NCBI RefSeq assembly: GCF_000150275.1
Contig: NW_002060959.1
Coordinates: forward strand, 618,371-682,370
DNA from: Trichoplax adhaerens
Taxonomy: Eukaryota; Animalia; Placozoa
Length of the DNA: 64,000 bases
Direction of reading: 5' to 3'
The first letter of the stretch is position 1. The number at the start of each line of letters is the position of its first letter. Positions 610 through 59,243 of this stretch are shown in pieces. The notes below the pieces were generated by a model that was not told the origin of the DNA, ran no database searches, and was given only the letters and a program-made list of their open reading frames with translations. The position numbers and the translations under genes were made by a program.

Positions 610-2613
610 ATGAGTAAAATGACAACTTTTGACTGGTTAGGTAAGGTACTGCTTTGTTTAGGCTAAATTAGCGGCAATTTCAAAGCGTTTATTTGTCGAA
701 GTAATTTGTTAGCAAACAACTTTAAAGTAATGTTAGCGATTTCGAACCACATTAACCATTAAATGCAGTCGTTCAAGTTTTCAAATTGAATCAATACTTC
801 CACAACAATTAACCAATTATTCGTAATTCATTACATAGTCTCTATTAATCCATTATGTGATATAGTAATCATCTTTCGACAACAAAGTTGAATTTCTACT
901 ACGGAAATATTTCTTTTGCAACATTTTTATTCACTAATTACTGAAGTTACTTAAAGTTATATTGTTGCCTATTCTACTAGTGAAAAGAGCATGGCAATAG
1001 TAATTTTACTTGCTTTAAAAAAATTTAAAATGTCAGATGTTACAATATTTAGAATGATAAATTAACGTTGGTATACCTCGATGGCGAAAAGTTTTTCTGA
1101 AACATGAAGAAAAAAATAACTGTTAGAGTAATAAGTCTAACAATTAAACATAAAATTTCAGCAAACTTGCTTGGATACAATGAGAAACGTGGAAAATAAA
1201 TCATCGATCATAATTATGAAGGTGAATTCACCTTCGAAATGTATAAAGCGATCTGCACGATTGATTCCTAAGGGATTCTAATTTAAACTTGCATATCAGA
1301 ATTTTAGTTACTTATATTTTAGTTTCAATAAAATTCTAATGTAGATATCACTCATTGTAAAGATTTAATTTGAACTTTACCACATTTACTTTTACCTAAT
1401 TTAATTCTCTGTTGGTGTGAATACTTGCAACAACTTAAAGTATTCCTTATTTTCTTTAGCAGCTATAAAAGGAAGTAAAAATAATGGTGTTGAATATTAT
1501 AATTATTTAAGAAACTTGACTGGAAACATGGGCCAAGTTGCTGCTAATTGCGGTCTCCTAGATCAACTTACTATTTGCCAGATAGCTACTAGGGGAAATA
1601 TATTTCATCATATTAATGAAGTTAGGCATCACTTTGGCGAATTAATGAGTAACTTATTTCTCTTAGTAAGATTAATATCATTCGTAATTTATTTACATGC
1701 TTCTTATGCCATCCAATCATTTAATCTATTAAAGTTTCTCATCGTACTTATTTTTGCCCGTAAACTTCACGTTGTAGTAGGCACTAGTATAGATATTGTA
1801 GGCAATAAATTACAGTCAAATGTTACAATAACGTCTCTTGCTGCTACGAAATAAATTGAAATCTAGCATTGGATTTGTTGAAAATTAACCAGGTGGCTAC
1901 CTTTCTGGCATTTAGATTAAAGGTCTAAAAAATCCGAAATGCGACGATCAGTCCCATAACATATCCGATACTGCTCTAAATTTAAATTTTAATAAGAAAA
2001 TTTTTTGATTTACAACCATGATCTTCTGTTTGTACTGTAAGTAAACTTCGTAAATTTGGGCAAACTACGATTCAATCAAAGTAGGGCATTCATTTTCTCA
2101 CACGTACGCTATACATATTATCGATTTCAAGAATAATTGCATCAGTTTGGGAGAAAGGTTGAAGTGCATTAAATTTATTTACCAGGCATAATATAAGAAG
2201 TATGAGTACTGCATTGATCATGATCTGCACAGAAGCAGATTGCTTAGTTGTCATTATAAGGGTTAAATTTATTAATTTATTACTGAATTATAATTGACAT
2301 CACTGATATAAATAGTATAGCAAAAAATTAGGGATTGATACAACGCAGTATAATGACGCAGCATAAAGTATTTATTCTAAGTTTTTAGGATCTTCAGGAT
2401 TATTTTTTATTAATACGCCTACGTGCAAATTAAAATGATAATTCATACTTTTTTTATTGCATGATTCTGGTATTGTTCATACTAATTCGTTGGATTATAA
2501 TATAGATTGCGTTTATATCATGGATTTGCAACCCTCCAAAAGAAGCGGAAAACGAGCTTTTCAATGGAAATGACATCCAGGCTAGCAACCTTATGAATGA
2601 CATCGAATCTTAG
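610..2613 (+). pseudogene. Paralog 1 of the secreted helical (cytokine-like) family, decayed. Exon remnants: e1 610-640, e2 ~1001-1221, e3 ~1460-1665, e4 remnant ~2333-2390, e5 2506-2613
   Basis: e1 ATG...TTAG|GTAAGG (phase 1). e2 fragments VILLALK / NMKKKITVRV / QTCLDTMRNVENKSSIIIMK|GT align with paralog 3 (VILLISLK / NIKEKISLTV / DFCENSLRDVEYRSPIILMK) but need frameshifts and cross stops. e3 YLRNLTGNMGQVAANCGLLDQLTIC...HFGELMSNLFLL|GTAAG is open. The e4 remnant CAACGCAGT has lost its Cys and carries a TAA. e5 IAFISWICN...SNLMNDIES* matches paralog 3 e5 (FTHWICQ...CNMINDT). Confidence 0.75.
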
Positions 2614-2705
2614 TATTACCGAAAATTAAAATATTTGCCAATAACTAAGCAAATTGCGAATAAAACTGTTACCTTACCTCTTTCTTAACCAATATAATTT
2701 GAGGC

Positions 2706-3255
2706 TGTAATGAAACTAGTATTGTGATTGTAGACTGTTAGCCATGTGTAGTATAATGTACGGTAGATGTTTATCCTAAGAGATATTTGGTAGCTATAAC
2801 TATAGACTGTAGTGGTATAGACTCTATGCTAGAGTACATATGACTATATACAGTAAGGTGTTGAGTTATTAATAAGGCTATAGGTAAAAATAGAACTGTA
2901 AATCTTACATTAGGATATGGTTAATTCATTGTACTTTGGCTGGTGTGAATAATGTCTACGTAAGTACTGTAGTCTTATCCATATTGGATTAATGATGGTC
3001 CGCAGTAGAATTGTGTTACTAAGAATAATTTACTATGTGTAAAATAAGGTAAAAGGTTGCCATGCAGATTGTAGCTGCGAATGCTACGAAAAGTATAAAA
3101 GCATGCAACTTTAGATTATTCTGTTAGTTCGTTCTAGATGTCTTTAGTAGTAGTATTAGGCTAGTGTAGAGCTGTGCGTAGTTAATCTTTGTATAAGATT
3201 CAATAAAACCCTTGTTTTTCTAAAATTTGGAATCTCGTGATCGGTATATATCACA
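2706..3255 (+). mobile_element. Solo LTR family A, copy 1
   Basis: TGTAA...TCACA, internal TATAAAA and AATAAA, flanks GAGGC/GAAGC; related copies elsewhere in the window. Confidence 0.85.
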
Positions 3256-3563
3256 GAAGCAGATAGATTAGGCAAGCTAGGCCGACTCTTTGAAAGTAAA
3301 TGAAGTATTACAGTTATGACATGATGGCAGCAAATAAATCCGATTTTGAATATCCTAGTATTTTACAAAGCTAAATTAAAGGACTGCTGAAAATAGTGTT
3401 AACAGCACATCTCTCTTATTTTCAAAGTGGCGTAAACTAAAAATTTATAAATCAATAAAAATGCATAAAGCAAGTCAGTAATTCATGCCAAATGTATAGG
3501 TTTTTCATAAAAAATTTTTAATATAACAGAGATTTTGTCCAGCGTAAATTCAGATAATGGTCA

Positions 3564-4592
3564 TGTGATAAAATCCGATCAAGAAAATTCGAATTTGTAG
3601 AAAATTAGAACTTTTATTAGATCTAATGTGATGGAGGGTTCGATATCTCAGAGGATTGAGATTTAGTCGCCATTTACAATTATTACAACAATGGGTTTAT
3701 AAAAGTTATGCATTATTGTAGGTTAGTAATGTGAAGTACAGTGAGGTAGTTACGGTAGATCAGCGTGCAAGCTGTCGTGAGTAACGAGTAGAAGTATTAG
3801 ACTGTGAGAGACTACCAAGAAGACTAACTGAGAGGCTAATGAACTCTGAGATAGAAATCGCCGGTATTTATAGTTTTAAAGATAGAGCACATGCAGAGAA
3901 TAGGATTGTGGAATTAGATACAACATATACCATAACAGGTTACAAAATAGCAGATGATTGTAGAAAACAGCGAGTACCGTAATAACTAAATACAGTAGTC
4001 TATATATGAATGTAGAGTAAGCGGACTGTAGATCTGTCTAAATATAAGAGCAATACAACATGTCTATATTCAAGAGTAGAATATAGTTACAGTATATTCT
4101 AAATACACTACATGTAATACAAAGATTAGCTACACACAGCTCTACTCTAGACGAATGTAACCACTAAAAGACTTCTACAAAGAACAGTCAGATATTCTAA
4201 TATCGCTTGCTTTTTATATTCTCCCTAGCTTTGTAGCTACAATAAGCATAGCAGCATTTTACCTTATTTTACATATAATCATATTATTACTAGCAACACG
4301 ATTTTACAGCGGACCATCGTTAATCCAATACGGAAACAATTACAGTATTTGCATAGACATTATTCCTACTACTCAAAGTACAATGAACTAACCATATCCT
4401 AACATATGACTTACAGTTCCACATTTTATTTCTAGCCTTACTATTAGCTCAACATCCTGCTGTATATAGCTATCTGTCCTTTAGCATATAGGCTACCATT
4501 ACAGTCTATAATTAAGAGCTACTGTTAGCGATAACGATATATCATACTAAACATGGGTATAGTCTACAATCACAATACTAAGTTACTTTATA
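3564..4592 (-). mobile_element. Diverged family A solo LTR interrupted by a nested LTR
   Basis: 3564-3626 and 4113-4592 align to the reverse complement of family A; flanks GGTCA/GGCCA. Confidence 0.75.
3627..4112 (-). mobile_element. Solo LTR-like insertion nested in a family A copy
   Basis: TGTGA...CTACA, flanks TCTAA/TGTAA, minus-strand TATAAATA; host sequence is contiguous once the insert is removed. Confidence 0.7.
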
Positions 4593-6620: not shown

Positions 6621-6794
6621 AAGAGATGTCAAATTTTCAATGCAGGCAACGACGTAGAGTGACTGTGCAAGCTTTTGTGTTACTACTATATTAAAGCTAT
6701 TGAAAGGTGTTTACTCGCAATTTCTTATTATTTATGTTTGTGTTATAATTAGAAACATTGCAAATTTATTTTTATTAACCTAACAAAACCATGT

Positions 6795-16169: not shown

Positions 16170-16803
16170 TGCGATAGTGTTATATACTGTATTAGAGTAG
16201 AAATATTTATTTTAGGATAATTCTGTTAGACTATCCTTATTTAGTTAACTTCTAATTTGGATATACTGTGTTTTAATATAGCACTGACTTTTTATGACAG
16301 TGACACATATACACATACTGAAATTAATAGTTATAATAGGGAATGCAAATCATCTACTTACAGTTCGAATCATTGTGATTGCAACTTACTTATGGTAGAT
16401 TGAAAATTATCCTGGAAATGTTCCGTGATCGGACATATCGTGGTCTGACTATTCTGTATTAGTCATTACATGTCTATGTTCGTAAATACTGTTGTCTGCA
16501 TTAAGGGAGCAGTAGCTAAAATTGATATCTAATTCAGTGAATGATTCCAAAGTTAACCGTACTAACTATGACTCATGAACTATTGAGGAAGAGTATATAA
16601 ATGCAGTATATCGTGTAATAAAGTTAATTCTTAAACTTAGTGTTTAACGTAAAATACGAGGCGTCTAAGCCTTTGTATAGTCTGCTAGTAGAGCAAAAGT
16701 GTTTCTGATAGTGCAGATATCGTTCCTTGATAAGTGGTTCAAGGAATTGACTTATTGATCGTACATTACGTACGTTATCTTGTTGCAAAGCTGTTTATTG
16801 ACA
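16170..16803 (+). mobile_element. Solo LTR family B
   Basis: TGCGA...TGACA, perfect TSD AGAAC, TATATAAA and AATAAA; highly similar to 28567-29197. Confidence 0.85.
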
Positions 16804-17525: not shown

Positions 17526-20500
17526 ATGATGAAAATAATTGAGTCAGGTATGACTAATCTTTCTAAAAGATAAATTAGCATCGCTTAGGCACAGTAAAAT
17601 TGCCAATGAGAAATTTATCGCTTCCTTAATGAACAATCATAAAACTATAGTGATGGTTATAATATCAATATTGAAATTATGTTGTTTTCTGTTCATACTT
17701 AGCCTAGTAGATCGTCTTACAGCAAAGCTACTGTAATAAAAGATGTCTTAAATTGCAATAATATTTTCATGTATAAGTAATCAGAAATTTCCAAGTTCGC
17801 TTTCAAGCTTAGATTATTTAATTGTTTTCATTAACATTTAAAATATTGCATAATTACAATCAAGTATTAATTCGATGCACTTATATCGCTATCAAACAAA
17901 TCGGTATCATCAAACTGAAGCATATTAGTAAACATATTAATGATTAGCCTTAAAATATTGCCAATTAATACCATAAATCTAGTCACCATGGCTATCAAAG
18001 ATAGCTTTTAAGATGAATATAATGGCCTTTTCAATATCACTATAGGCAATCATCGAATAACAACACCTCGAATTAATCTTTAATTTTTCAGATATATTCT
18101 TATTAACGATCATTGGATACTCGTGTTTATGGACTGAGGCTCATGATCATGCTTTTGATCATTTGCCGGATCAATTTTGCAACGCAAACGTGTTCGAAAA
18201 TCGGTTATCTGAATGCATCCGCGATAAAGTCACCAAATTGCAAAAACGCTTAGGCCAAATTGAATGCGACTATGGTTACGTAGAGCGTGTGACGTTCGGA
18301 ATTTCTGCCTTGCCAAGGGAGATGGTAAATGTACCAAGCTATTTGTAGCGATAACTTTTTACGATTGCGATAAAGCAGCCAAGACTTAAATTTAGTTTTT
18401 GCCTAGCTATATGTAGTAAATATAAATCGTACAAGAAACCCATGAATTATGATTAGTTATAAAAAGTGACAGTCTATAATAATAAGCCTACGTACTCGGG
18501 TCATAATTAATTCCAACAAAGCCTGGGGAATTAAAGTTTAAGATTATTCATCTACAATAAGATCCATCATTAGTAGCATAAATAGATTTATATTACTGTG
18601 ACAGCAAATTATGTAAATGATTAAAGATAGATATTATAGTTGCTTGGTAACCAGTAATGAAAGCAAGCAAACGAAATTAAATAATCAAATGGAATTATAT
18701 TCAGATTAAAAATATTACAGTTAGACAAAGGTACGAAATAAAAATAGAGCTCATTAACAAGTTGTGATATATACCAATCACGAAATTCTAAATTTTAGAA
18801 AAATAAGGGCTTTTATTGAATCTTATACAAAGATTAACTACACAGCTCTACTCTAGCCGAATACTACTTCTAAAGACATCTAGAACGAACTAACAGAATA
18901 ATCTAAAGTTGCATGCTTTTATACTTTCCGTAGCATTCGCAGCTATAATCCGCATGGCAATCTTTTACCTTATTTTACACATTGTTAAATTATTCTTAGT
19001 AAGACTATTCTACTGCGGACCATCATTAATCCAATATGGATAAGACTACAGTACTTACGTAGACATTATTCACACCAGCCAAAGTACAATGAATTAACCG
19101 TATCCTAATATATGATTTACAGTTCTATTTTTACCTATAGCCATATTAGTAACTCAACAGCTTACTGTATATAGTCATGTGTACTCTAGCATAGAGTCTC
19201 TACCACTACAGTCTATAGTTACAGCTACCAAATATCTCTTAGGATAAATATCTACCGTACATTATACTACACATGGCTAACAGTCTACAATCACAATTCT
19301 AAGTTACATTACACAAGCTTATGATCAAAATATTCTTATAATACAGTTAATACTCTGCCACTTAGTTAGCGTTACGAAATGCATTCCGAATATTAAATAA
19401 TTGCAGGCTTTGTTATATAGCAAATGCGGAAATAAATAATGAATACTTTAGAGATTCTGTCTTGCGTAATTGTGCGCATTTTAAACGAAATGAATTAAAA
19501 TTATTTAAAAACCCTAAGTATAGATATTTTAATCCGTATTTATTATTAGTGAAGGAGTCTGCTTTATCAAATTAAAATAAAATTATATAATGCTTTACGA
19601 AGTAAAAGTAAATTACATATAAATAAGTGTATAATTTAGTCCAGTTGTTTCTATGCTCAAAAAAAGCTTTGAAATTACTTTTATTAAGCTTATTATATTT
19701 TAATAACATTGACTATCGGCTAAACTACAACTAGGTAGCCCCCCAAATTTATTGGAACGTTGGCCTGTATGAAGAATTCTTGCGTAACATCACCTATAAT
19801 GTTGCTGCAACACTTTCAAAAAATGGTATACTAGATAAATTGGTAAAGAAATCAGAATCATTTAGTCGATCAAGGAATTGCAAGCTTAATGGCACAGAAC
19901 TAAAGAGCGCTTTCTATGATTTTTACATAGGTTTAATCAAATTTGTAAGTTATTTTATTGGAATACGTAAGCTTATTTTAATATGTGTGCCTAATCAATT
20001 CATTGTAAAATGTATAGTGAGTATAAATTGATGAACACCAGTGTCGTGTATTGAATACTGCATATTTTAGTAAACTCTACTATATGTTCTGAACTTTTCT
20101 TTGATTAGCTTTCGGCTGTGTAATAAATTTCTTCTTTGTACTGGGATATAGTTGTATCCTTACCGATGTCACGAATATATTGCAAGGCGCCTATTACACC
20201 AATTTCAGGTATTTAGTGTGATAGATAATAATCAAAGTCCAATCTGTTTAACCGCAAAATTAGTGGCAAACTCATGGTATAACCGATAAAATTGTTAAAC
20301 ATTAATCATATCGGAAGTTGAAATTAAAATAATTTGCATTTGCTATGACTTGCTAGTTAGCTAATATACTATAAATTGCTGTAATAGTAATCATATGATA
20401 ACTATTTTTTAGCATCACCAAACTGGAAATTATTGCTATAAATTGCAATATCAGAATTCAAACGGTAATGTGATTAATAATGCCGACAACAGATGCCCTG

Positions 20501-20595
20501 ATTTAAAGAATACCTTGCTTTTAACAACAAACTATGCGAATTACTTGTTCAATGAATTGGAGGAGTTAAAAAAATATAAAATTGGAAAAATGTAG
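17526..20595 (+). CDS. Paralog 2: intact 5-exon secreted protein, 234 aa, putative four-helix-bundle cytokine-like. Exons 17526-17547, 18092-18324, 19735-19944, 20152-20208, 20413-20595
   Basis: All introns GT-AG with phases 1,0,0,0. The 705-nt spliced frame is open: MMKIIESDIFLLTIIGYSCLWTEAHDHAFDHLPDQFCNANVFENRLSECIRDKVTKLQKRLGQIECDYGYVERVTFGISALPREM/VAPQIYWNVGLYEEFLRNITYNVAATLSKNGILDKLVKKSESFSRSRNCKLNGTELKSAFYDFYIGLIKF/LYPYRCHEYIARRLLHQFQ/HHQTGNYCYKLQYQNSNGNVINNADNRCPDLKNTLLLTTNYANYLFNELEELKKYKIGKM*. Hydrophobic N-terminus; exon-by-exon similarity to the other paralogs. Exon 1 is the least certain. Confidence 0.85.
18763..19313 (-). mobile_element. Solo LTR family A in intron 2 of paralog 2 (antisense)
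   Basis: Reverse complement of 2706-3255; flanks CAAGT/CAAGC. Confidence 0.85.
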
Positions 20596-23072: not shown

Positions 23073-23986
23073 TGTCACAAACCAACTTCGTGACAAGGAT
23101 AACGTAAAACAAATCTCTAAATCTCTATAGTCTCCGGGATTCAGTATCCCTACTCACAAGAATTTAGACGCCTTTGATTCTACGTTAAAACAACTATACA
23201 ATTGAGAACTGCTTTATTCAACTATCTGACGGGTTTATATACCCTTCTACAGCAGCTAACATTCACAAGTCATCTTATAAAAATACTTGGGTGAGAACAT
23301 CTACTAACTAGTTTTTCACAGTCGGACTACAATATGTCCATTCACAGAATCATTTCAGCACACATTACAGCACAGCAATAAATTTACAGTAACACATTTA
23401 TAATTAGATGTCACAACCGAGATTGTAACACAAGAATTAAACGGGATTCTTTCCTCTAAAGTAGACTTAACTATCTAAGCAACTAACTCTAAGCACTCTT
23501 TAATCAACCAAACTTAGATTCGAGTCTTAGACGATAGATTACTCACGTTAAGGACCAAAACTTTATTCTAGAAGCTATTTTATTAAAATGTCCGATTGAA
23601 CGCACAACTTACAATTACGACTAGCAACTGATAACCATCTGTCATCGACTAACGTAACTAACTCTCAATTAAGAACTTTGAGACTTTATATATCCTCACC
23701 AACTTCGTTGGTGCAAAAACAGTAATTAATTAATAACCCAGTCTACATACTTATTATAGCTAGAATCACAACACACTTTCTATGACATTTAATATTAGTT
23801 AATTAGTAGCTAGGTGTCAACATATGATTCATCACACAACAAAATTATAATATTGATGATGCATTAATTAATGAATGTCACATTAGAGTAATTCCTATTG
23901 TAAGTAACTAGTTGTAATATAATATCACTATATTATATTAACCAAATTTAGATATCTATTTCTTCACGGTAGTTCGCACCGTGACA
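23073..23986 (-). mobile_element. Solo LTR family C carrying a nested family E insertion
   Basis: TGTCAC...GTGACA with TSD TAGCC; matches 40607-41048 once 23409-23887 is removed. Confidence 0.88.
23409..23882 (-). mobile_element. Solo LTR family E (young), nested
   Basis: 474 bp, TSD TTAGA, near-identical reverse complement of 31038-31511. Confidence 0.9.
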
Positions 23987-25340: not shown

Positions 25341-26642
25341 ATCCCACCCACCCTCCCTTGAAATGAGCAGCGCGGGGGTATTTATACTACTGTTAAATGA
25401 CTCTGATTATGGGTTCATTTCAATAGGTCAGTATAAGATTCTTACAGTACTTTTAACCTCAAGATTTCTTCATGTAAAACGAATAGCTCTAAGGTAGTAA
25501 TTTCTGCAGAGTACTGATTATTAAAATAGTATTCGTTATATCGCTAAGGGTGGCCACTGGGCCTTTAAATTTTGATTTCATGTAATATTCTGATGAAAAT
25601 TGAATAAACATAGAATCTTTATTGAGTTTTCTATACAGCCATTTTGATTGTTACATTTTCTTATAACGGTTGTTATCGACAGAGCAAGCTTTGCTTGCAT
25701 ACGACAGCGATCCTTAGACACATTATAATGATTGGTATAGAATTGACCACAGTACGAAGGACATTCTACCGCACTGTAGATATCTTACAGTACCTGCTAA
25801 TCTTAACTTGGTATGTCCATCACCGTACATTAGTTATCATAATGTGCTCTGGACCATTAACTAATCTTAATATAGCATAGTATATTACTGTTACTAGGAT
25901 ATATATAATATCCAATGATAATACTATCTGTTAATTTTATTAACAAATTGACCATAAACGTATATTTGAAAGTTTCGCTCACCAACCTTAACATAGCATT
26001 AATACCGTATATAGTAACCATCCTTATTCAGTAAACATACTAATACGAAAGTTACTTAACGAAATTTGAATTGGTATAGAAATGAATGATCTGTAGGGTT
26101 TATGTAAATATTATTGAGAAGGTAGAAGTGATTGATACACATCAGTAGGTACTATTAGTTCTATTGCTCTCTTACAATTCGTAGTGTTATCCTACTGTAG
26201 TTCCCCTGTCCCGATTACTAATATGAAAGTTACTTAACGAAATTTGAATTGGTATAGAAATGAATGATCTCTAGGATTTATGTAAATATTATTGAGAAGG
26301 TAGAAGTGATTGATACACATCAGTAGGTACTATTAGTTCTATTGCTCTCTTGCAATTCGTAGTGTTATCCTAATGTAGTTCCCCTGTCCCTATTACTTTT
26401 GATTTCTATACTGTATATAGTAACCATCCTTATTCGGTAAACATACTAATACGAAAGTTACTTAACGAAATTTGAAAAGTGATTGATACACATCAGTAGG
26501 TACTCTTAGTTCTATTGCTCTCTTGCAATTCGTAGTGTTACCCTACTATAGTTCCCCTGTCCCGGTTATTTTTGATTGCTATATATCATATTACAAAAAG
26601 TATTTCTAAGAGGATAATGTTCGTTAGTCAGCGATCTGATAG
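25341..26642 (-). repeat. Non-coding repeat D, copy 1, with an internal tandem triplication
   Basis: Reverse complement of 41745-42702; 178-bp units at 26041-26218 and 26219-26396 plus a deleted third unit to ~26570. Confidence 0.85.
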
Positions 26643-26965: not shown

Positions 26966-27530
26966 TTTCACGGTTAGAACCACCGTGAAGACTAAATGAC
27001 TAAATTTATTGGTTAACATTTATATATGGAAACAACTAATAATAACTTGCGGTAAGAACTACGTTAGTTATTACTTTGTTACTGTAAATTATGCTGCACT
27101 GTAGTACAAGTTCTTACACGGCGAATAATATTAATTGATTATAGTTTTATGTCTTTTAACGCTTTTGATTAACATCCTCAAGATATTCAATTGTCAATGA
27201 TACTATAAATAATTCTGTGCATGGATATACTGTAATCTAATTATCTAGAATCCTTCAGTACATGTCTAAGATTATGAATAATTTCTATATTAATTTAGCT
27301 ATTCAATACGAACTAAATTTTATGAACTGGTATGACTCATGCATGATAGCAGCTGCCGAAGAGTATTTAAGCTCGGCAGGTAGCTGCAAAAAAAGAATTC
27401 TATTGCTGTTTAACGTTGAATCAAGGTATCTAAATTCTTGTGAGATAGTTTAGGGATACTGAATTCTGAAGACTGCAGTAATTTAGAGGTTCGTTTTACG
27501 TTATCTTTGTCACGAAGCTATTTTGTGACA
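26966..27530 (+). mobile_element. Solo LTR family C (long subfamily)
   Basis: TCACGGT..ACCGTGAAG start, TTTGTGACA end, flanks GAATT/GAAGT; similar to 39810 and 58199. Confidence 0.8.
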
Positions 27531-28566: not shown

Positions 28567-29197
28567 TGTTACAGTGTTATATACTGTATTACAGTAGAAA
28601 TATCAATGTTAGGATAATTCTATTAGACTATCCTTATTTAGTTAACTTCTAATTTGGATATACTGTATTTTAATATAGCACTGACTTTTTATGACAGTGA
28701 CACTTATACACATACTGAAATTAATAGTTCTAATAGGGAATGCAAATCATCTGCTTACAGTTCCAATCATTGTGATTGTAATTTACTTATAGTAGACTGT
28801 AAATTATCATGGAAATGTTCCGTGATAGGACATATCGTAATCTGACTATTCTGTATTAGTCATTATATGTCTATGTTCGTAAATACTGTTGTCTGCATTA
28901 AGGGAGCAGTAGCTAAAATTAATATCTAATTCAGTAAATAATTCTAATGTTAATTGTATTAACTATGACTCATGAACTATTGAGGAATAGTATATAAATG
29001 CAGTATATCGTGAAATAAAGAAGAATTGTCCAACTTAGTGTTTAACGTAAAATACGAGGCGTTTAAGTCTTTGTGTAGTCTGCTAGTAGAGCAAAAGTGC
29101 TCGTGATAGTGCAGATATCGTTCCTTGATACGTAGTTCAAGGAATTGACTTATTGATCGTAGATTACGTTATCTTGTTGCAAAGCTGTTTTGTGACA
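28567..29197 (+). mobile_element. Solo LTR family B
   Basis: TGTTA...TGACA with perfect TSD CTAGT. Confidence 0.85.
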
Positions 29198-32122: not shown

Positions 32123-33899
32123 ATGATTGCATTACTGCTTATATGTAGGCTGCATTACATCAATACCGTATAATCTTCAATCATTAAGTAACTTGAAATT
32201 GGCTATGGAACCAATTTTTACAATAAGTGTTTCAATCCTTAGCGTTCTAATTTGTTTTATTATTGACATGAAATATTAACTCCAACGAAACATCAGTGGA
32301 CAGTACGTTAGTAGCAAGAAAGAAACATTAATTTGTTGCGTTAGCAACGATATTTATATTGCTTTTAGATTATACTCTTATTACATGCTATTTCATTGCC
32401 ATAAAATATTTTAATGTCGATTAGAAAATTCATTAAATTAATTTTAAGTTTGGTTTTAAGCCGATAATAAAGTATTATTGTTACAATCTCATGGAAAATT
32501 ACTTGGTATGCACTTTGTCTCAGTCATATTTAAATTCTTTAGGTGTCATCTTGCTCATCTCTCTGAAAATTTATAGCTGTCAAACTATGCCGACACCAGA
32601 TGATAGACTTGATGCTATTGATAACATAAAAGAGAAGATAAGTTTAACAGTTCAAGAATCAGTAGAAATTTTAGGAGGAATGATTAGTGATTTTTGTGAA
32701 AATTCGCTTCGTGATGTTGAATACCGTTCTCCAATTATACTTATGAAGGTTAGCGAATATAAGCTGCTACACAATACTATATAAATTTAATTTCATTATG
32801 TAGGTATTTATTCATAATTTCTTAGTGAAAGAGCATTCTTCAATATGATAGAAGAATCAAAGAGTAGCTATAGCTTTGATTTGAAACTACTACTACATCT
32901 AGTATCATAATAACAATGCAGTATTAATTTTAATTTCTGAAATATTATATGTCAATCAATCATAACATAATAATGATAATTAAGGAATATCCACATCTTT
33001 CTAATTGATAAGCATTTAATACGAATTATCGTATTTGTAACAGGGTACGAAAAGAAATCATGGCCCTTTACTTCCTCAATCTGAGAAAATTTTATCTAAC
33101 CTGACATACAATATTGGAAAAATTATTATGACTGGGGGTTTACTTGATCAACTAACAACCTGCTCTATGTCAGCATCGAAAAACAAAGCCTGTTCTTTTG
33201 TCAAATTGCATCATAATTTTCATAAAATATTGGCTAATCTACTTCCAGTGGTAAACTTTTAAATTGATAACTAATCGGAAAGCAAATAGCTAGTAGAAAA
33301 TAGATAACGCATGTATAAAAAAATCCCGTGCATATGTCAGCACGGAATTTTCATCCATTTCTGGCAGATCTTGTTCTAAACAATTACTATTATGATACAA
33401 ATTAATTAACTTTCCTGACATTGCAGTTATATCCAACGCAGTGCAAAGAGAGACAAATGAAGCATTTCAAAGAAGATGGAAGGTATGTCATATAGTAATA
33501 TTGATAANNNNNNNNNNNNNNNNNNNNNNNNNNNNNNNNNNNNNNNNNNNNNNNNNNATACGAGTATACTATACACACCGTATCTTTCCATAATCATTGC
33601 TCAGAAAGTTGTTAGTCCATTAACTATAAGAATTTTTTGAGGCAATTTTAAGTGAAATATTACGGTAAAGCATAGTAATTGCGTTATATTTTCTTTTAGC
33701 TCTGTTAATACCATATCATATATTACCATAACTAATATATTTGCATTAACAGCCTTCCTTTACACATTGGATTTGCCAACTGTCTCACTTACTGCAAAAT
33801 AATAAAAAAGGAGAAATGAAATTTAACGTCTTAATATGTAACATGATCAATGATACAATGTCAGTTGCACTAAAAATTCGTGAATTTCTCGGCATTTGA
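32123..33899 (+). CDS. Paralog 3: 5-exon secreted cytokine-like protein (~225 aa). e2 32543-32748, e3 33044-33250, e4 33427-33482 (1 nt short), e5 33753-33899; e1 uncertain (32123-32144, 32205-32226, or read-through from ATG 32491)
   Basis: VILLISLKIYSCQTMPTPDDRLDAIDNIKEKISLTVQESVEILGGMISDFCENSLRDVEYRSPIILMK/GTKRNHGPLLPQSEKILSNLTYNIGKIIMTGGLLDQLTTCSMSASKNKACSFVKLHHNFHKILANLLPV/LYPTQCKERQMKHF.../PSFTHWICQLSHLLQNNKKGEMKFNVLICNMINDTMSVALKIREFLGI*. Canonical splice sites. e4 is 56 nt versus 57 nt in paralogs 2 and 4 and ends 25 nt before an N-gap. Confidence 0.75.
33508..33557. other. Assembly gap (50 N) inside intron 4 of paralog 3
   Basis: Run of N. Confidence 1.
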
Positions 33900-36165
33900 A
33901 AGTAATTATGGTAAAATTAAACCTTGCTTTCACCAAGATTTTATTATCAGTTTGATTTGAACGCATTGCTGGCAGATACTACAGATATAAAATTAACCGA
34001 TTAATAACCTAAAAATTACGGTAACCTAATTGCTTCAACAACAAAATACTAATTTGCTTACTGCAGCATTCATGAAGTAAAAATCATGATATCATAAAAC
34101 GTATACGTGTTCATTTATACGGTATTAAGGATGCTAGCTTTACCATTATGCCTAGACTTGGGGACAGTTTTTCTCCATAACTTTTAGTAGTATGTAATTA
34201 AAGTTCTACATGCTATTAATCTCAAGTCTTTTTCCTCACTCTATTGCGTTAATCAAATAAGTGGTCATCATTAAATCTGAAGATATTGAGCTGTCTCTCA
34301 ATCGGAGAATCCCAATCACAAATCAATTACCGAATTGCGCAAAATTTTTCATGCAGCAGTTCTTTAGCTATAGCATGGCAATGCGATGATGTTCGCTATT
34401 AATTATATTAAACCTAACAGTTTGATGTACGAATAATAATTTCTTAATGTACTCGTCAGCGCTAATATAGACGGTAATTTGCTTGATAATATTGCATTTA
34501 CTAACCTAAAAATCGTATTTATGATGTTTTGGGTATCTAACTTGGACTACGTATAGTAGATATTTTGAATGTGTTAGACTAATTTAAAATACTTGAATTC
34601 TCATTTTGGCAAATGCAAATAAAAACTTTAATGCATTACAGTATATCATTATTAGTTTATCTGTCTTCATTTTACGTAATGTATTAGCACAGATCCTGAA
34701 GTAAATTCTAGCCTTTAGCTGAAGATCAACTGTATGGCTATCCTTTATTATAACTTTGTTCAGTATGAATAAAAGTATTCATTGAGATCATATTATAACC
34801 AAAAAGCTTTTATTGAATCCATTATTACCGACTAATTGTTCCTTTAGGAGTATTATATGTGTTTCTAATCGAAATACTTGGCGATAATACTTTCTAACTT
34901 GTCTCCAACTTCCATAGGCAACTAATTTTCAAGCTACAATTAAAACGAAAATACAGTTTATGAATACTTTGATAAACTACATGTGTTAATAAGAGCTCGC
35001 TTGTGAAACAATATCAGAGTAACAAGAGTCAGCATAAATAATTTAGAATTCTTAATATTCATTAAATTTTAGACTGTCTTCCTCCAATAGCAGAATCGCA
35101 ATGATTCAGTAAATTACTTTCAATAATAGTATTCATTGAACCGATACCATAGCATTGTACCTAATTTTACTGATATACGAGATATACGAGTAGTTAGAAT
35201 AAGGTACTATTTATGCATATAATACTTTATGTAGCATTGGAACCAATAGACTCTTTTAAGCTTTCCAGTGCCATAAAGAATTTGAATTTATTTATTGTTC
35301 AATATTTAACACATTCCTAGGTATAAAAATATGAAGAATGAAATCATAAAACAAGAACTTTACATTGTGGAAGGCAATCTGCCATATTTGTCGATATTAG
35401 TTAAATCATAGAATAGAATCAATAGTTACTGCTCACTTTCATTTGTATCAGCAAGTTAGCTTAGTGATGTTATCAATTCTGATAACGATGGACAATTCCG
35501 GTCATTAAAAAATTCTTCGTTGCTTCCTAGAATGTGAAATAGACGAGCATTGATCCGCTTATTTAACTGATTAGGTGATTTTCTTGTAAAGACAACTTAC
35601 TTTGCACGCAAAATATCTCGAAAATAAAAACTTCATTACTGAACTTTTAATTAGCCTACATCAATTTTTTCATTTATGTTTTAACAATTTTATTCATCTT
35701 TTATGTTTCTGCATGATAGAGTTACCTTAAGCATACGCAGACGTAACAATAATGAATTTTCAAATGTGTATAACAATTAAACTCTTTGATCTCTTTTATA
35801 TAATACGGTCAAATTAAAGAAAGTTCTAGAGAAATCAATTATATTGCTTGACTTGATAGCTCCTCATTGTCACTTTACATAAATATGATGGAATCCCTGA
35901 AATGATGTTTTAGAAACTGTGGACTTCAAAACAATTCTGGAATAAGGAACTATCATCGAGCTCTTTCAATTATATTTTATAGGGTTGCTTCTGAACAATA
36001 GTGTCAATTAGTTCATGGAAAAAGCTACTTCAGCATAAATTTCGAGTATTGAATGATAGAGTAATGCATAATTAATATAAACCAATGTCTTAAAAATTTT
36101 ACCAAGCATGTCAAACATTTAGCAATCCAAACCTTCACATATTATTTTAGTTTAAAAAATATTAC

Positions 36166-36720
36166 TGTAGTGTAACTAGTATTGTGAATGTAGACTGTTA
36201 GCCATATTTAGTATAATGTACGGTAGATATTTATCCTAAGAGATATTTGGTAGCTATAACTATAGACTGTAGTGGTATAGACTCTATGCTAGAGTACACA
36301 TGACTATATGCAGTAAGCTGTTGAGTTACTAATAAGGCTATAGGTAAAAATAGAACTGTAAATCTTATATTAGGGTATGGTTAATTCATTGTACGTTGGC
36401 TGGTGTGAATAATGTCTACGTAAATACAGTAGTCGTATTCATATCGGATTAATGATGGTCCGCAGTCGAATAGTCTTACTAAGAATAATTTAACTATGTG
36501 TAAAATAAGATAAAAGGTTGCCATGCGGATTGTAGCTGCGAATGCTACGAAAAGTATAAAAGCATGCAACTTTAGATTATTCTGTTAGTTCGTTCTAGAA
36601 GTGTTTAGTAGTAGTATTCGGCTAGAGCAGAGCTGTATGTAGTTAATCTTTGTATAAGATTCAATGAAGCCCTCCCTTACTTTTCTAAAATTTAGAATTT
36701 CGTGATTGGTATATATCACA
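36166..36720 (+). mobile_element. Solo LTR family A
   Basis: TG...CA with perfect 5-bp TSD ATTAC. Confidence 0.88.
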
Positions 36721-39809: not shown

Positions 39810-40362
39810 TGTCATGGTACGAACCACCGTGAAGAGTAAATGACTAAATTTAGTGTTTAACATTTATATATGGAGATGACTAATGAGGACTTACATTAAG
39901 AACTGCCGCAGTTATTATTTTACTACAGTAAATTATGTTATATTGTAGTAAAAGTTCTCATATGGTAACTAATATTAATTGATTATGGTGCAATGTCTTA
40001 CAACGCTTGTGATATTCAATTATAGATGATCCATAAATAATTCTGTGTGTGGACATATTTTAGTCTAATTATCTAGAATTGTTCAGTAAATGTCCAAAAT
40101 TATGAGTAATGTCTGTATTAATTTAGCTATCCAATACGAGCTAAACTTCATGAATTGTTATGACTCATGCAATATAGCTGCTACCGAAGGGTATTTGAGC
40201 TCGGCAGATAGTTGAACAATAGAATATTTGAAAAGATGTTGTAACGTAGAAGTAAAGATATCTAAATTCTTGTGAGGTAGTTAAGGGATACTGAATTCCG
40301 AACACTATAATAATTTCGAGATTTATTTTACGTTATCTTCGTCACGAAGCTGTTTTATGGAA
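39810..40362 (+). mobile_element. Solo LTR family C (long subfamily)
   Basis: Collinear with 26966-27530; 3' end degenerate. Confidence 0.78.
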
Positions 40363-40606: not shown

Positions 40607-41048
40607 TGTCACAAACCAGCTTCGTGACAAGGATAACGTAAAAAAAATCTCCAAATTACTATAGTCTCCAAGATTCAGTATCCCTTAACTACCTCACAAG
40701 AATTTAGACGCCTTTGATTCTACGTTAAACTCAATTAGACAATTGAGAACTGCTTTATTCAACTATCTAACGGGTTTATATACCCTTCTACAGCAGCTAA
40801 CATTCATGAGTCATCTTATAAAATTACTTAGGTGAGAATATCTACTAACTAATTTTTCACAGTTGGACTACAATATGTCCATTCACAGAATCATTTCAGT
40901 GCACATTACAGCTCAGCATTAAATTTACTGTAACACATTTATAATTAGAGTAATTCCTACTGTAAGTAACTAGTTGTAATATATTATCACCATATTATAT
41001 TAACCAAATTTAAATGGCTATTTCTTCACGGTAGTTCGTACCGTGACA
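40607..41048 (-). mobile_element. Family C LTR with adjacent polypurine tract (3' LTR remnant)
   Basis: Minus strand reads AAGCGAGGGGAA-TGTCACGG...; no matching TSD, as expected for a 3' LTR still attached to internal sequence. Confidence 0.8.
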
Positions 41049-47035: not shown

Positions 47036-47172
47036 NNNNNNNNNNNNNNNNNNNNNNNNNNNNNNNNNNNNNNNNNNNNNNNNNNNNNNNNNNNNNNNNN
47101 NNNNNNNNNNNNNNNNNNNNNNNNNNNNNNNNNNNNNNNNNNNNNNNNNNNNNNNNNNNNNNNNNNNNNNNN
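47036..47172. other. Assembly gap (137 N)
   Basis: Run of N. Confidence 1.
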
Positions 47173-48637: not shown

Positions 48638-49203
48638 TGTGATATATAACGATCACGAAATTCCAGATTTTAGAAAAATAAGGACTTCATTGAATCTTAT
48701 ACAAAGATTAACTACACACAGTTCTACTCTAGCCGGATACTACTACTAAAGACTTCTAGAATGAACTAACTGAATAATCTAAAGTTGTATGCTTTATACT
48801 TTTCGTAGCATTCGCAGCTATAATCCACATGGCAACCTTTTATCTTATTTTACACATGGTTAAAATATTCTTAGTAACACCATGCTACTGCGGACCATCA
48901 TTAATCCGATCCGATATGAATAAGACTACAGTATTTACGTAGACATTGTTCACACCAGCCAGAGTACAATAAATTAACCATATCCTAATATATGATTTAC
49001 AGTTCTAGTTTTACCTATAGCCTTATTAGTAACTCAACACCTTACTGTATATAGTTATCTGTACTCTAGCATAGAGTCTATACCACTACAGTCTATGGTT
49101 ATGGCTACCAAATATCTCTTAGGATAAATATGGAAGTTGCGCTACCGTACATTATACTAAACATGGCTAACAGTCTACAATCACAATACTAAGTTACATT
49201 CCA
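48638..49203 (-). mobile_element. Solo LTR family A
   Basis: Reverse complement of family A with small insertions; TSD degenerate. Confidence 0.82.
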
Positions 49204-53900: not shown

Positions 53901-54516
53901 AAACGACACTAGAAATACTATTTCAAGTCTACAGTACTCTCATTAATTAATTTTTAATAGCTCAAAGTGTGAAATCAATAGTTCAATTCAATTATCGTAC
54001 AAATAATACTCTTCATTCTTATGTATTCAGTTTTATATTAAATTCTAATATAGCATCAGATTAATGAATTACTTAACAATAATTTAATATTTATAATTGT
54101 TCTAATATTAAAAAAGGCCAAAGACGGAAGCTACAATGACTTTAGCATTAATGTCTGACCAATATTACTAAGAAGAATATCATTAATAACTTGAACAGGA
54201 GTTTGATAGCTATCTACAAGTATATTCAAATAAAGAGTTTTTCTTGGTTCTTAAGTCTTTTCTATCGTCACCTTGTTCACCTTGCTGTTTTACTTTTAAT
54301 AATAAATATTTGATAGAGTTATACTGAAGTTTATATATTTATCGCCCAATCTGGTATATTTTATTCTACTCTATCATCGTTACCTTTAAGCTATTTGCTT
54401 TACTAACTCGACTACAATTAGAAAAATGAGCTAATAGACTCAATATATCGCCTTGTACTTTTCATTCCTTTTATTACTACTCATGTTTTCTATAGCTAAC
54501 TAGACTTACCTTTCAT
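50916..54516 (-). pseudogene. Possible decayed multi-exon gene on the minus strand, unknown family
   Basis: Clean 105-nt exon-like block 51020-50916 (TTTTTTCAG|..NIEYIGEMKRSLQTQKNVFQCSLVERVPPLKQNL..|GTAC). Donors GTAAGT after 52868 and 54510 (ATGAAAG|GTAAGT) and GTGAGT near 52130. Intervening coding-like blocks carry stops or frameshifts. Confidence 0.3.
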
Positions 54517-56137
54517 AAATTTTTGAAAAATATCTAAAGAAAAGTAAATGAAACATATTAAAATATTATAATATGTAGTAGTCATTATACCTTTACTATA
54601 GTTATAATCAGTTTAACTTGTCTAATACTTATTTCTTTTCAACATAATCAGCATTCTAGTTGAAACTAATACAATTAAACGTAATTTTACTTCAACTGTA
54701 AATGATGCCATAGAATTAAAGTTTTCATTCATATTTCTATCATTTTTATTTTCTATACCGTTAGTATTTACTTTTTTTGATGACAATATGTACATTCTTA
54801 AAACAAATGATACATTAAAATAAACCCAACCTATTTTTTAACTGATTAATGTAAATGCTATAAATTGTCGGCAAGTGATAGCTATTTTCATACAGGTTTA
54901 TAGCCCACCTGCTTATAATTTCAATCTAAAATTAATTTCCGCTTTTAATAACAGTTTGATGTTATTTTTGAATAAACTCAAGATAATCGGTCTATATTTG
55001 GATTTAAATTTATCCTACAAGCGGAAGTAAAATGCCGTTGCTAAAATGTTTGCAACTATCTACTTTGCACAATGATATAATTTATTGCACTAAAGTTGTC
55101 CACTTCAATAATAAGGTGTGGTGTGTTCACCTTCATTATTTTAAAATTTCAATATCGTCAGTTCTTTCTACTATTATCTTGTACCAATATAATAATGATT
55201 TTATGTCAATTAAGAAATAGCTTTAGAGTATTAATATATCTATTATATATTAAAATACAATTTCTTATTTTACGATAAGGTTGTACTACATATAAATCAT
55301 CACTATTATCTTATAATACTATTTTTATTAATATAAATATTATCTATCAAACAATCGGCCTATGCAATTGCGAGGTTTTAATTGACATCTTTACATTCAA
55401 TTAACGTTATTGAAATTGCTATATTCCAACACAACTAATTAATAGTTCCTAAATGTGATTAACGATAACGATTAGAAAGAGACCAGTATGCATAACTTGT
55501 AATAAATGTTTTCAATGACGATCACTATTTTAATTAAAAATTATACGAAAGCATTGTTGGTAAGCACTTAATTTAATTAATTGTCGTAATTGTTGGAGCT
55601 TAATTTCACAAAAAATGATAGATTCCTGTTTCAATTAAAAATCTACGATAGTCTTTAGCTGGTAACTTACGGTAACAGTCTCTACTAGTAAATTACTGAT
55701 TACAGTATCCATTTAAGAATTTGCCAGAACTAATTATTAACAATTTATCTTGTGCTTATCTAATTATCTACTGTCATAGTACTGCAATACAAACTAATCC
55801 AACCAAAGCAACTGCAATTCTTTCATACGTAAGAGTATAAATCCAGAATATATATAGACTTGATCTGAATAGGTACATTTGCAGTTCGTTCTGAAGCACA
55901 CGAATACTTGATAGTTTCTTTCACTTAGCTTATAGACTAAAATATCCTGTATTGAAGCTTATAAGTAATGCATATAACAATGGAATGATGAGCTAGCATC
56001 CTGTTTATCAACCATCAAATTTCAGCGACCAATCACTTCCTTAGCGATTCTAGCAACTTTTGTTATTAAAGTGATTCTAGTGCCTATAATATTAGGAGTA
56101 CTATTGAAGTGTTAACAGTATGGTAGATGCAGCTAAC

Positions 56138-56153
56138 CCAATTGCTATATAAA
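56138..56153 (+). promoter_or_regulatory. Candidate CCAAT/TATA promoter of paralog 4
   Basis: CCAAT then TATATAAA; the TATA starts 96 nt upstream of ATG 56242. Confidence 0.5.
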
Positions 56154-56241
56154 TCCAGCGGTTATCATTAATCCAGTTATCACAATTATTTCTTAGTTGC
56201 TACATAAAGGACGAAATCACCAAATTGTCAAACTAAGAAAC

Positions 56242-59200
56242 ATGGCTTACGCTATTTCAAGGAAAGGTAATTAATAGATATAAATGTATGTAGTGTAACT
56301 TCTTATAATTATTCATAATAATCGTAATATTATAAATTCGAATTAGATCGTAATCTACAGTACATAATCTAGCAACAGTTATAGTGTCCTGGATTAGCTA
56401 TATGGAATCTCAAGTTTAGGCAAAATAATCTTAATGCATTTCTATTTCTCACTTATAAAGAATTCTCACCACGGTAGTCAAATAATATCTGTCGAGCCAT
56501 GTAATATTTCTTTCTTGATTAGAAGTAGTAATAGATCAAATACTAAACTAAATTATAACATGATCTTTGCATGCATTTTTCACTGAAATCTAATTAGCTT
56601 AAAATTTAATCTAGTCAATACAAAATTCACGTGCAAATCTTCTATTAGATGAGACGTACTGAACAATAGAATACGCTACTTATAAATATGCATGATAAAC
56701 ATGTCTTAGGATAACGAGAGTACTATTCACGTTTGTATTGAGCAATATTAATGTATTGTAATATTCTATTTTGCTGTTGATGAATCTGCAAAACTAAGAC
56801 AGCCAAATTTTATCTGTTTAAATAAGATTCACCTTCTGTACACTAAAATAAATTTTGACAAGCCATATTCTCTAGTTATAAAATTGTATCACATTTGACT
56901 GTAATAATTATTTTTAGTAATTTAAGATATTCTCAGGTCAACTAAAATGCAGTCCAGCATACTACATATTTGAAATCATTAAAGTTAATCCTTCTTCGTT
57001 ATACCAACCCATGATGATCTTAATATATTTTGATTCTCAATTTGCTAGATTACCTCATTACTGTGCTACTGATTAAGTTACTAATGCCATCGACGATGGC
57101 CTTAGACCATAATTTGGATTATCAATTCACAAATTCTCAAGGCAAAGATCAGTTGCTCTATGAATTGAACGAAAACGCTCAAAAAAGTCTTCATGCTTTG
57201 AATAATTTGACGAGAACATTTACTCAAATATGCATCCAAAAACATGGAAACTCATATAAAAGTAATCGATCAAATAGAACAACCGCGAAAACAGTCATAT
57301 TTGGAGTTGCTTCTAGCACAAAAGATATGGTAACTCGACTATTTTAATGTTAATTGTCTGGTATTTAAGTCTTTATGTCCCACACTAAATCATTTAGTAT
57401 TATTGATCAAATAGAAATTCAAAGTTTATATCTTATCGATTGCTTAGCGATGTTTTATAGAAGATTAAGTTATGGTTCTGATTTATATCGAAATGTAACT
57501 GTTCTAAGAAAGTGCCTTTAAGGATTAAATTAGTTACAATCCTTTTTACTTATTAGTAAATATACCATAAATAATTAAATTGACTTATAATAAACGCTTT
57601 ATTCTAGACCATGTTAATGATTCTTATCTATAATTGTTTACTATTTTTTGAGTTGATTTATTATAAATATTGAAAAAATGAAACAAATATCAACTAAGTT
57701 TCGGAAATACAGAATAATATTAAAGTTTTTCAAATTTTTAAAATGGTCTTCATACAGTTATTCCATCTTATACTTCCGAAAATTAACTGTAGTAATGCTT
57801 TAGTTGTTTAATTCATGTCAAATCTGTAATTGAATTACTTACATTTATCTTATTATTCCCCTATCATTTCTGAGATAATATTTCTACTCTAGGAGTGTTT
57901 TCAAATTTTTCTATTATTATAACAGGATCCTCCCAAAAATCCATTCAAGGTACATCAATTTTTGAAGTTTGTGTCAAATATTACACATAACGTGGCCGCA
58001 GCTATTGCAAATGGTGGAATAATTGATCAAATTGTACTAAACAAAGCATTTGCTGACGGCAGTGAGATCTCTCATTCCTGCCAATCAAGCCAATTGCTAT
58101 CCGGCTTGCGAACTAACTTTGAGGAACTATTCAATCGTCTAGTAAAATTTGTAAGTCTTTGATAAATAGATTTTCTTATAAGACTATCTTATAAGACTAG
58201 TCACGGTACGAACCACTGTGAAGAGCTAATGACTAAATTTAGTGGTTAACATTTATATATGGAGATAAATAACAATGGCTTACAGTAAGAACTACGGTAG
58301 TTATTATTTTGATACAGTAAATTATACTGTACTGTAATAAGAGTTCTTATACGTTAACTAATGTTAATTGATTATAGTGTTATGTCTTGTAACGCTTGTA
58401 ATGAATATCCTGAAGATATTCAATTATCGATGATACTATAATTAGTTCTGTGTATAAACATACCGTAATCTTATTATCTAGAATCGTTCGGTATTTATCT
58501 AAGATTATAAATAATTATTATACTAATTTAGCTATCCAATATGAACTAAATTGCATAAGATTCGTTTTACGATATCTTTATCACGAAGCGGGTTTGTGAC
58601 AACTATGATGCAATAATCTATCCTAATATTTTATTTATTCTATATCGTAATTTTGGCCACATATCATTTATGAGGCAAGGAAAATGACAGCATCTTATAT
58701 ATATCAATTTATCAAGGTTTTTGACCGTAGAAACTAAACTCTTTTTACGTTCATTTGATACCGTAGATTCACCCTTACCGGTGCCAGAATCAGACAAAAA
58801 TGCACATGCTTCATAATCTCCAGGTATAATTGAAATTTAGCTAGCTATTATGCTATTATATTCAGCTTTTTATTATAAACCAGATGAAATTCACTTTTTG
58901 TTTATTTCTAATTTTAGTTTACAGTAAACGCATTAGATTTCACGATGGGTACTCTTTGTCAGTGTTACACTTTAACAGTTAGCCATGTAGATATTAAGTA
59001 ATTAACATATTTTCATTCCCGTTTTATTTTAACTTACTTTGTTTACCATCAGCTTTAATTTATGTATAACCCTGATTTTGTATCCAATAGCTTCAAAAAA
59101 AAAGCAACTGGAATTGCTTCGTTACATCATCAACTGATTCGGAATACAATGGGAAATACGGTCCCTGCTACTTAGAAATACAACTATCTTCCATTGTATC

Positions 59201-59243
59201 GGCGCTAAATTCCCTATCAGATCGAAATCAGTCATTTCGATAA
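56242..59243 (+). CDS. Paralog 4: intact 5-exon secreted protein, 246 aa, putative four-helix-bundle cytokine-like. Exons 56242-56266, 57049-57329, 57926-58150, 58767-58823, 59091-59243
   Basis: GT-AG introns with phases 1,0,0,0. The 741-nt frame is open: MAYAISRKDYLITVLLIKLLMPSTMALDHNLDYQFTNSQGKDQLLYELNENAQKSLHALNNLTRTFTQICIQKHGNSYKSNRSNRTTAKTVIFGVASSTKDM/DPPKNPFKVHQFLKFVSNITHNVAAAIANGGIIDQIVLNKAFADGSEISHSCQSSQLLSGLRTNFEELFNRLVKF/IHPYRCQNQTKMHMLHNLQ/LQKKSNWNCFVTSSTDSEYNGKYGPCYLEIQLSSIVSALNSLSDRNQSFR*. Closest to paralog 2. Confidence 0.88.
58199..58601 (+). mobile_element. Internally deleted family C LTR in intron 3 of paralog 4
   Basis: Same termini and 5' body as the 26966 and 39810 copies, with an internal segment missing. 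Confidence 0.8.

Follow-up and report, generated by a model that had tools for sequence, protein, structure and literature searches.

A tandem gene family in Trichoplax

A 64,000-nucleotide stretch of the genome of the placozoan Trichoplax adhaerens (NCBI RefSeq assembly GCF_000150275.1, contig NW_002060959.1, positions 618,371 to 682,370 of the forward strand; hereafter the window) contains a cluster of related genes whose products may be secreted helical proteins that act as cytokine-like signals. An earlier note, made from the DNA letters alone, had described four co-oriented, diverged, five-exon paralogs and had read them as ligands resembling long-chain class-I helical cytokines. The window is AT-rich (26-33% G+C), and long open reading frames are few. 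A six-frame scan of the window for N-[IL]-T-x-N followed by G-[IL]-[LI]-D-[QK]-[LI] found four sites, all on the + strand, at positions 1513, 19786, 33098, and 57977. We refer to the corresponding genes, in this order, as p1 (610-2613), p2 (17526-20595), p3, and p4 (56242-59243). The exons that hold the motif are mutually homologous (expectation values, E, of 2e-4 to 5e-5 with tblastx among the four regions). When full proteins were compared with BLASTP, P0008 (the product of p4) matched P0001 with E of 5.6e-18 and 29% identity over 119 residues, and the remaining pairs had E of 1e-6 to 1e-10. The cluster consists of real, tandemly duplicated, mutually related genes, and the four co-oriented, diverged paralogs of the earlier note are there.

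The structure of p4 is shown by spliced contigs of RNA in X4, X7, and X8, three runs that belong to three different studies (X7 is registered as an RNA run). All four of its introns are GT..AG introns with RNA support, so the junctions that had been proposed from sequence are correct. The intron phases are 1-0-0-0, and the five exons form an open frame of 246 amino acids. The product is identical over 246 residues to the public T. adhaerens protein TRIADDRAFT_60733 (P0008), and the host is indeed a placozoan, as had been supposed. Exon 1 (56242-56266, 25 nucleotides, placed by exact mapping of P0008) encodes MAYAISRK plus one nucleotide and has a phase-1 donor; like all the exons of p1 to p4, it is on the + strand. 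The RNA joint between exons 1 and 2 runs from 56264(+2) to 57047(+2) and is found in X4 and X7. Exon 2 (57049-57329; RNA joints and mapping) holds the rest of the signal peptide, predicted helix A (residues 38-77 according to DSSP), and the start of the AB loop. Exon 3 (57926-58150; RNA, mapping, and DSSP) holds the conserved NIT sequon, GGIIDQI, and predicted helices B and C. Exon 4 (58767-58823) has 57 nucleotides, begins with IHPYRC, and is supported by mapping and by RNA joints in X4, X7, and X8. Exon 5 (59091-59243; RNA, mapping, and DSSP) encodes the CD loop with its two cysteines, the C-terminal helix D, and the stop codon, and RNA contigs extend the 3' untranslated region to about 59690.

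The strain behind run X7 is divergent, and within p4 it differs from the window at 10 coding positions, of which 6 change the residue. Nine of the 10 differences are in exon 2 and none is in the motif exon, exon 3. They point to exon 3 as the part of p4 under constraint, although so few differences do not allow a test for selection.

Intron 3 of p4 holds an interspersed repeat (58201-58624), with copies at 26968-27391 and 39812-40219. Runs X4, X5, and X8 contain many short contigs over this repeat, at a depth of 61-123, so the repeat is abundant in those runs independently of p4.

Mapping and splice sites give p2 the same layout as p4: five exons with phases 1-0-0-0. Its first exon (17526-17547, 22 nucleotides, phase 1) is a prediction from sequence, and the public model from Trichoplax sp. 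H2 uses a different first exon. Exon 2 (18092-18324), which was placed by tblastn of P0001 and by splice sites, encodes the core of the signal peptide and predicted helix A. Exon 3 (19735-19944; motif scan and mapping) reads NIT...GILDKL. Exon 4 (20152-20208, 57 nucleotides) begins with LYPYRC, and exon 5 (20413-20595) ends with a stop codon; both rest on mapping and splice sites.

As assembled, p3 has a problem with its reading frame. Exon 2 (32543-32748) has a phase-1 acceptor at 32543; no micro-exon was located upstream of this acceptor, and the alternative is a single open frame from an ATG at 32491. Exon 3 (33044-33250), found by the motif scan, reads NLT...GLLDQL. Exon 4 (33427-33482) begins with LYPTQC and has 56 nucleotides instead of 57, so exon 5 (33753-33899), which encodes HWIC...LIC, the C-terminal helix, and a stop codon, is out of frame. 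In the JGI model of this gene (TRIADDRAFT_60732), translation continues in the shifted frame and ends with a short, foreign tail. The ortholog from Trichoplax sp. H2 (P0007) reads ...EDWK|PSFTHWIC... in frame, which implies a 57-nucleotide exon 4. An assembly gap at 33508-33557 lies within intron 4, 25 nucleotides past the donor of exon 4. Either the assembly dropped a base where a sequence contig ends, or the frameshift in p3 is real. A second assembly gap (47036-47172) is intergenic and lies in the 22-kb stretch between p3 and p4, in which the exon-3 profile described below found no family exon.

The remaining copy, p1, is not a clean five-exon gene. Its exon 3 (1441-1665), which reads NLT...GLLDQL, has a phase-0 acceptor at 1441, and there is a stronger-looking alternative acceptor at 1460, in phase 1. 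Upstream are a candidate exon 1 (610-640, 31 nucleotides, with a phase-1 donor) that we infer from sequence and a 60-nucleotide remnant of exon 2 (1162-1221), which is homologous to the end of exon 2 of p3 (QTCLDTMRNVENKSSIIIMK). Downstream are an exon-4-like piece of 64 nucleotides (2198-2261; KYEYCIDHDLHRSRLLSCHYK), which is out of phase, and a short exon-5-like piece (2506-2613) that reads SWIC... and has a stop codon. We looked for an exon 4 that contains P..C and for a last exon whose phase would fit, but found neither, and the pieces of p1 cannot be joined in frame via canonical splice sites.

Overall, p2 and p4 are clean copies, p3 has a frame problem, and p1 looks either degenerate or differently built. 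The five-exon structure that had been proposed for all four genes holds for p4 (by RNA) and for p2 (by mapping), but not for p1, and exon 4 of p3 is one nucleotide short. Since p1 lacks a public model and its pieces do not join into one frame, and since p3 has a frame break of one nucleotide, one might suspect that most of these copies are pseudogenes in decay or noise in the annotation and not a working gene family. We think that this is very unlikely. Fully spliced p4 RNA was seen in three studies and has an open frame of 246 amino acids, open frames and motifs are kept in both p2 and p4, the ortholog of p3 is in frame in Trichoplax sp. H2, and the motif exon has no substitutions in the divergent strain.

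The family extends beyond the window. We built a profile from the four motif exons and searched the 105.6-Mb assembly, which has 1414 contigs (the window is on contig C1398). The exon-3 profile found six loci, four of them within the window, so the cluster of four in the earlier note is correct for the window but the family is larger. The fifth member (C1398:591452-591655) is on the same scaffold, 27 kb upstream of the window. Its exons 2 and 3 are nearest to TrispH2_012010 (39% identity in exon 3), and the 3.2 kb that we examined did not reveal its exons 4 and 5. The sixth member is on the minus strand of a small contig (C1259:7311-7472). It is 97-98% identical to TrispH2_012010 in exons 3 and 5 and is its ortholog in T. 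adhaerens, and this contig may come from the same genomic region as the cluster.

Against 1.84 billion representative proteins, the exon-3 profile had six matches at E <= 0.001: four Trichoplax gene models, an open reading frame from a Logan contig (P0004), and a doubtful protein of 1621 amino acids that aligns to profile positions 7-24 only. The frame of P0004, which has 94 amino acids and is on an 8,280-base contig, continues through a p1-like exon 3 (NLTENVGQVIVDGGLLDQL). The T. adhaerens assembly does not encode P0004, so a p1-type copy is present in another placozoan strain or species. With the exon-3 open frame of p1 as the query, a word-indexed protein search found nothing, and when P0001 or the family alignment was the query, known Trichoplax records were the only matches. 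The protein searches and fold predictions took as their input stretches of the window and the public proteins P0001, P0003, P0006, P0007, and P0008. We found no paper that mentions any of these gene identifiers. The family is detected only in Trichoplax and has no match in Pfam, in the sequences of the PDB, or in the literature. In that sense it is unrecognised, as had been claimed, but p2, p3, and p4 (though not p1) already have public models as "hypothetical proteins."

The predicted proteins and their fold

These proteins of about 230-250 amino acids probably enter the secretory pathway and are likely to be N-glycosylated and disulfide-bonded. As the earlier note had it, the N-termini are of the signal type: there is a hydrophobic core in p4 (Kyte-Doolittle value of 2.8) and in p2 (2.4), followed by small residues, as judged by a heuristic. 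An N-x-T sequon at the start of predicted helix B is invariant across the members that we compared, and the Gly and Asp of a GG[IL][IL]D kink motif are kept in all of them. The same members have in common a cysteine in the B-C link and the cysteine of [YH]PxxC, and a pair of cysteines in exon 5 is kept in the full-length members, so there are about five conserved cysteine positions overall. The motifs [YH]PxxC and [WY]xC...C, which were thought to be shared by all four paralogs, are present in p2, p3, and p4, but p1 reads KYEYC in place of [YH]PxxC. To our knowledge, neither N-x-T...GG[IL][IL]D nor [YH]PxxC is a known signature of cytokines.

We also considered whether these could be precursors of neuropeptides or prohormones and rejected this reading. 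Dibasic pairs are few and do not align between paralogs, and because the dibasic sites are not conserved, processing as a prohormone is unlikely.

As for the fold, we propose that the mature protein would be a long-chain, up-up-down-down four-helix bundle like IL-6, IL-11, CNTF, prolactin, and GH. We propose this because of one AlphaFold2 model (of p4) and because of the spacing of helices and loops in two models. The best AlphaFold2 model of p4, made from a five-row family alignment, has a predicted local distance difference test score (pLDDT) of 54.5 overall, with 65-78 in the helices, and a predicted template modelling score (pTM) of 0.58. According to DSSP, its helices are at residues 38-77, 111-129 plus 134-145, 150-178, 184-201, and 229-245, and its long loops are at 78-110 and 202-228. 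Helix C is kinked at the border of exons 3 and 4, and helix D is short.

The solved structures that are nearest to this model are long-chain cytokines. With Foldseek, nothing was significant (all E > 0.6); the top rows were prolactin, LIF, IL-6, IL-27, IL-11, leptin, CNTF, and G-CSF. VIA-align, which is independent of Foldseek, was run exhaustively against 48,161 representative chains, and all of the top 12 were long-chain cytokines, with Z of 8.0-9.9 and alignments that span residues 35-246 or so. These were IL-11 (9.9), CLCF1 (9.8), CNTF (9.6), placental lactogen (9.3), LIF (9.3), IL-27 p28 (9.0 and 8.8), OSM (8.9), IL-12 p35 (8.5), IL-6 (8.2), GH (8.2), and IL-23 p19 (8.0). Generic bundles had Z of at most 7.5 and aligned to residues 38-180 only. 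When the Foldseek list was rescored, all of the top 48 entries were helical cytokines, and 47 of these were long-chain class-I cytokines, the exception being interferon-tau. The best of them was prolactin (Z of 10.5, with 168 of 186 residues aligned).

According to DSSP, the models of p4 and p2 have the same order of elements: A, a long loop, B, a short link, C, a long loop, and D. This long-short-long order of loops is a physical reason to expect crossover connections. Both models also agree with most of the helix layout that had been drawn by eye, with A in exon 2, B and C separated by a short linker in exon 3, and D at the end of exon 5. Exon 4, which had been drawn as a loop, is helical in the models instead. 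In sum, the p4 model itself has, without doubt, the topology of a long-chain cytokine; it is the model that is in doubt. We think that a cytokine-like fold is plausible for the family.

Do these proteins act as signals?

Our favored reading, to which we would give a probability of roughly 0.45, is that this is a family of secreted helical proteins that folds and acts as a cytokine-like extracellular signal. The proteins would diffuse outside of the cell and would bind and cluster a single-pass surface receptor. That the family members are cytokine or hormone ligands, as in the "cytokine/hormone-like ligand cluster" of the earlier note, is something that we infer: the structural neighbors of p4 point this way, but no sequence link, no JAK-specific domain, and neither of the two receptor modules tried was detected.

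Many results count against this reading. First, pLDDT of 54.5 was reached by only one of the five AlphaFold2 models of p4, and the remaining four had 33-45. Also, Z of about 10 is inside the range that is common for helical bundles, and the tool itself warns about values below about 13. Second, the AlphaFold2 model of p2, which was made from a nine-row alignment, had pLDDT of 41.4, formed no compact bundle, and had generic helical hairpins as its neighbors. We view this failed model as uninformative rather than as negative, but it does mean that the cytokine-like fold was not replicated. So the structural check that had been suggested did lead to long-chain four-helix cytokines, but from a low-confidence model of one paralog, while the other gave no bundle. 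Third, other approaches do not lead to cytokines. For p4, the ESM Atlas has a poor model (pLDDT of 0.40), language-model features of p4 and p2 have no cytokine neighbor, a Pfam search found no cytokine family at E <= 10, and a search of PDB sequence profiles found no cytokine family or other relevant match. Fourth, the introns of the family separate other helices than the introns of IL-6 do, and phases of 1-0-0-0 are fairly likely for any secreted protein. Fifth, we found no cell type that expresses these genes: 60733 and 60732 are absent from the supplements of the placozoan cell atlas (PMC10580291).

Finally, the usual partners of these ligands were not detected in the T. adhaerens genome. 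Our pathway searches were six-frame, exon-level Pfam searches of the genome with no eukaryotic positive control, so their negatives are indicative rather than conclusive. Jak1_Phl, FERM_F1, and FERM_F2, which are specific to JAK, had no match in the genome, SH2_1 had sub-threshold matches only, and EpoR_lig-bind and IL6Ra-bind, the two receptor modules that we tried, had no match.

Given these results, it is possible that the family is a lineage-specific secreted helical glycoprotein that does not signal at all: it might be a component of granules, mucus, or matrix, or it might be membrane-active or antimicrobial. The cytokine topology would then be an artefact of a low-confidence model, or else the default packing of helices that are joined by long loops. 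The low confidence of the p4 model, the lack of a replicated fold in p2, and the tool's caution that helical bundles commonly have Z below about 13 would all fit, as would the lack of any link to cytokines by sequence or language model and the failure to detect the canonical receptor module and JAK. Furthermore, the secretory cells of Trichoplax express many orphan helical secreted proteins (PMC11452194). On the other hand, the list of neighbors is not generic: helical cytokines take all of the top 12 and all of the top 48 places and align across the whole mature chain, and ordinary bundles match only three helices, at lower Z. And the long-short-long loops, which force crossovers, are found in two independently modelled paralogs.

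If the proteins do act as cytokine-like signals, then we need to consider how they could do so. STAT is present: STAT_alpha was above the Pfam curated cut-off at two loci (C1414:9845024-9845248 and C1413:8995512-8995727), although STAT_bind had no match in the genome. Similarly, STATdb lists a Trichoplax lineage of STAT (PMC4144846). Thus, of the host-genome components whose search had been suggested, STAT was found, but not a JAK-specific domain or either of the receptor modules tried. With STAT present and with JAK domains and receptor modules undetected, a STAT output would require another kinase, or else the receptor would be of another type. Such a receptor could be CRLF3, which has been reported in T. 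adhaerens (PMC12026705), or a receptor tyrosine kinase, the receptor type of IL-34, SCF, and M-CSF.

Relationship to known ligands

The genes for GH, PRL, EPO, and IL-6 have intron phases of 1-0-0-0, and class II cytokine genes have phases of 0-0-0-0. The IL-6 gene has a tiny first coding exon that ends in phase 1, followed by phase-0 introns (PMC13081863). Both p4, whose structure is proven by RNA, and p2 fit this IL-6-type layout, with a tiny phase-1 exon and then three phase-0 introns. Because the intron positions differ from those of IL-6 and the phase pattern is not rare, the gene structure argues only weakly for kinship with cytokines.

Could the family nevertheless be true homologs of the bilaterian class-I cytokines (IL-6, GH, and EPO) that arose before the Bilateria and act through a fibronectin-type receptor (CRLF3) on STAT? 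The structural neighbors are cytokines only, the five-exon layout is as in IL-6 genes, and both STAT and a reported CRLF3 are at hand. We consider this quite unlikely, however. There is no sequence-level signal toward cytokines of any kind, the introns fall differently relative to the helices, JAK and the classical receptor modules were undetected, and the four-helix bundle is easily reached by convergence. Also, IL-6-family ligands were found only in vertebrates by a 2026 survey, which did not screen placozoans (PMC13203501).

A related view is that these are genuine pre-bilaterian helical cytokines, that the ligand class is older than the module of receptor and JAK, and that it first signalled via another receptor. 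The receptor would then be CRLF3, another receptor of the fibronectin or immunoglobulin type, or a receptor tyrosine kinase, and it would lead to STAT or to other outputs. This too seems unlikely to us.

Compared to the long-chain class-I cytokines, the family is alike in its probable secretion, with a mature protein of about 200 amino acids, and in the predicted order of its elements (helix A, the long AB loop, helices B and C joined by a short link, the long CD loop, and helix D). These cytokines are also the nearest solved structures to the p4 model, with Z of 8-10.5 and 135-170 residues aligned. Unlike them, the family has no sequence or profile similarity to cytokines, its introns have other positions relative to the helices, the p4 model has a kink in helix C where exons 3 and 4 meet and a short helix D, and the host has no detected JAK-specific domain or either of the receptor modules that we tried.

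Another comparison is to the Unpaired proteins of Drosophila (Upd1-3). These secreted ligands are glycosylated, have a predicted helical structure, cannot be linked to the vertebrate cytokines by BLAST, and are encoded by a tandem gene cluster. By this description, the two families are alike: both would be glycosylated, secreted, helical ligands of invertebrates with genes in tandem. But Unpaired acts via Domeless, Hopscotch (a JAK), and Stat92E, and no JAK or Domeless-type module was detected here. A third group, which comprises IL-34, M-CSF, SCF, and Flt3L, consists of extracellular four-helix-bundle ligands that work without JAK. IL-34 is among the structural neighbors of p4 (Z of 6.8 with VIA-align), but these ligands are short-chain dimeric bundles and are a poorer match than the long-chain cytokines.

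Where helical cytokine ligands first arose is hard to trace, since they diverge faster than sequence searches can follow. As far as we know, the accepted invertebrate ligands of this type are all from bilaterians, with Unpaired as an example, and we found no paper on helical cytokines in placozoans. If our favored reading is true, then a placozoan family with cytokine topology would date the fold of these ligands to before the Bilateria. Trichoplax has no nerves, has STAT, and has no detectable JAK, so the family would help us ask how such ligands signalled before there was a JAK-coupled receptor. The family would also give us proteins with which to fish for receptors, including the orphan receptor CRLF3. 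Even if the resemblance is convergent, this is an undescribed signalling or secretory family of placozoans with a defined set of motifs and confirmed gene models.

Repeats in the window

Besides the repeat in intron 3 of p4, the window contains several others. A repeat of about 500 nucleotides is found downstream of p1 (2705-3212) and of p3 (36165-36673), and the two copies are 93-94% identical. Further pairs of repeats are 4230-4426 and 18936-19132, 16176-16475 and 28573-28872, 19029-19251 and 48909-49131, and 23191-23408 and 40732-40949. There is also a tandem array at 26038-26566 with three units of 178 nucleotides, of which the later two are 97% and 60% identical to the first. Finally, the segments 2521-2670 and 59808-59957, which follow the stop codons of p1 and p4, have a weak translated similarity (30% over 50 codons). 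This may reflect a shared repeat or a conserved 3' element.

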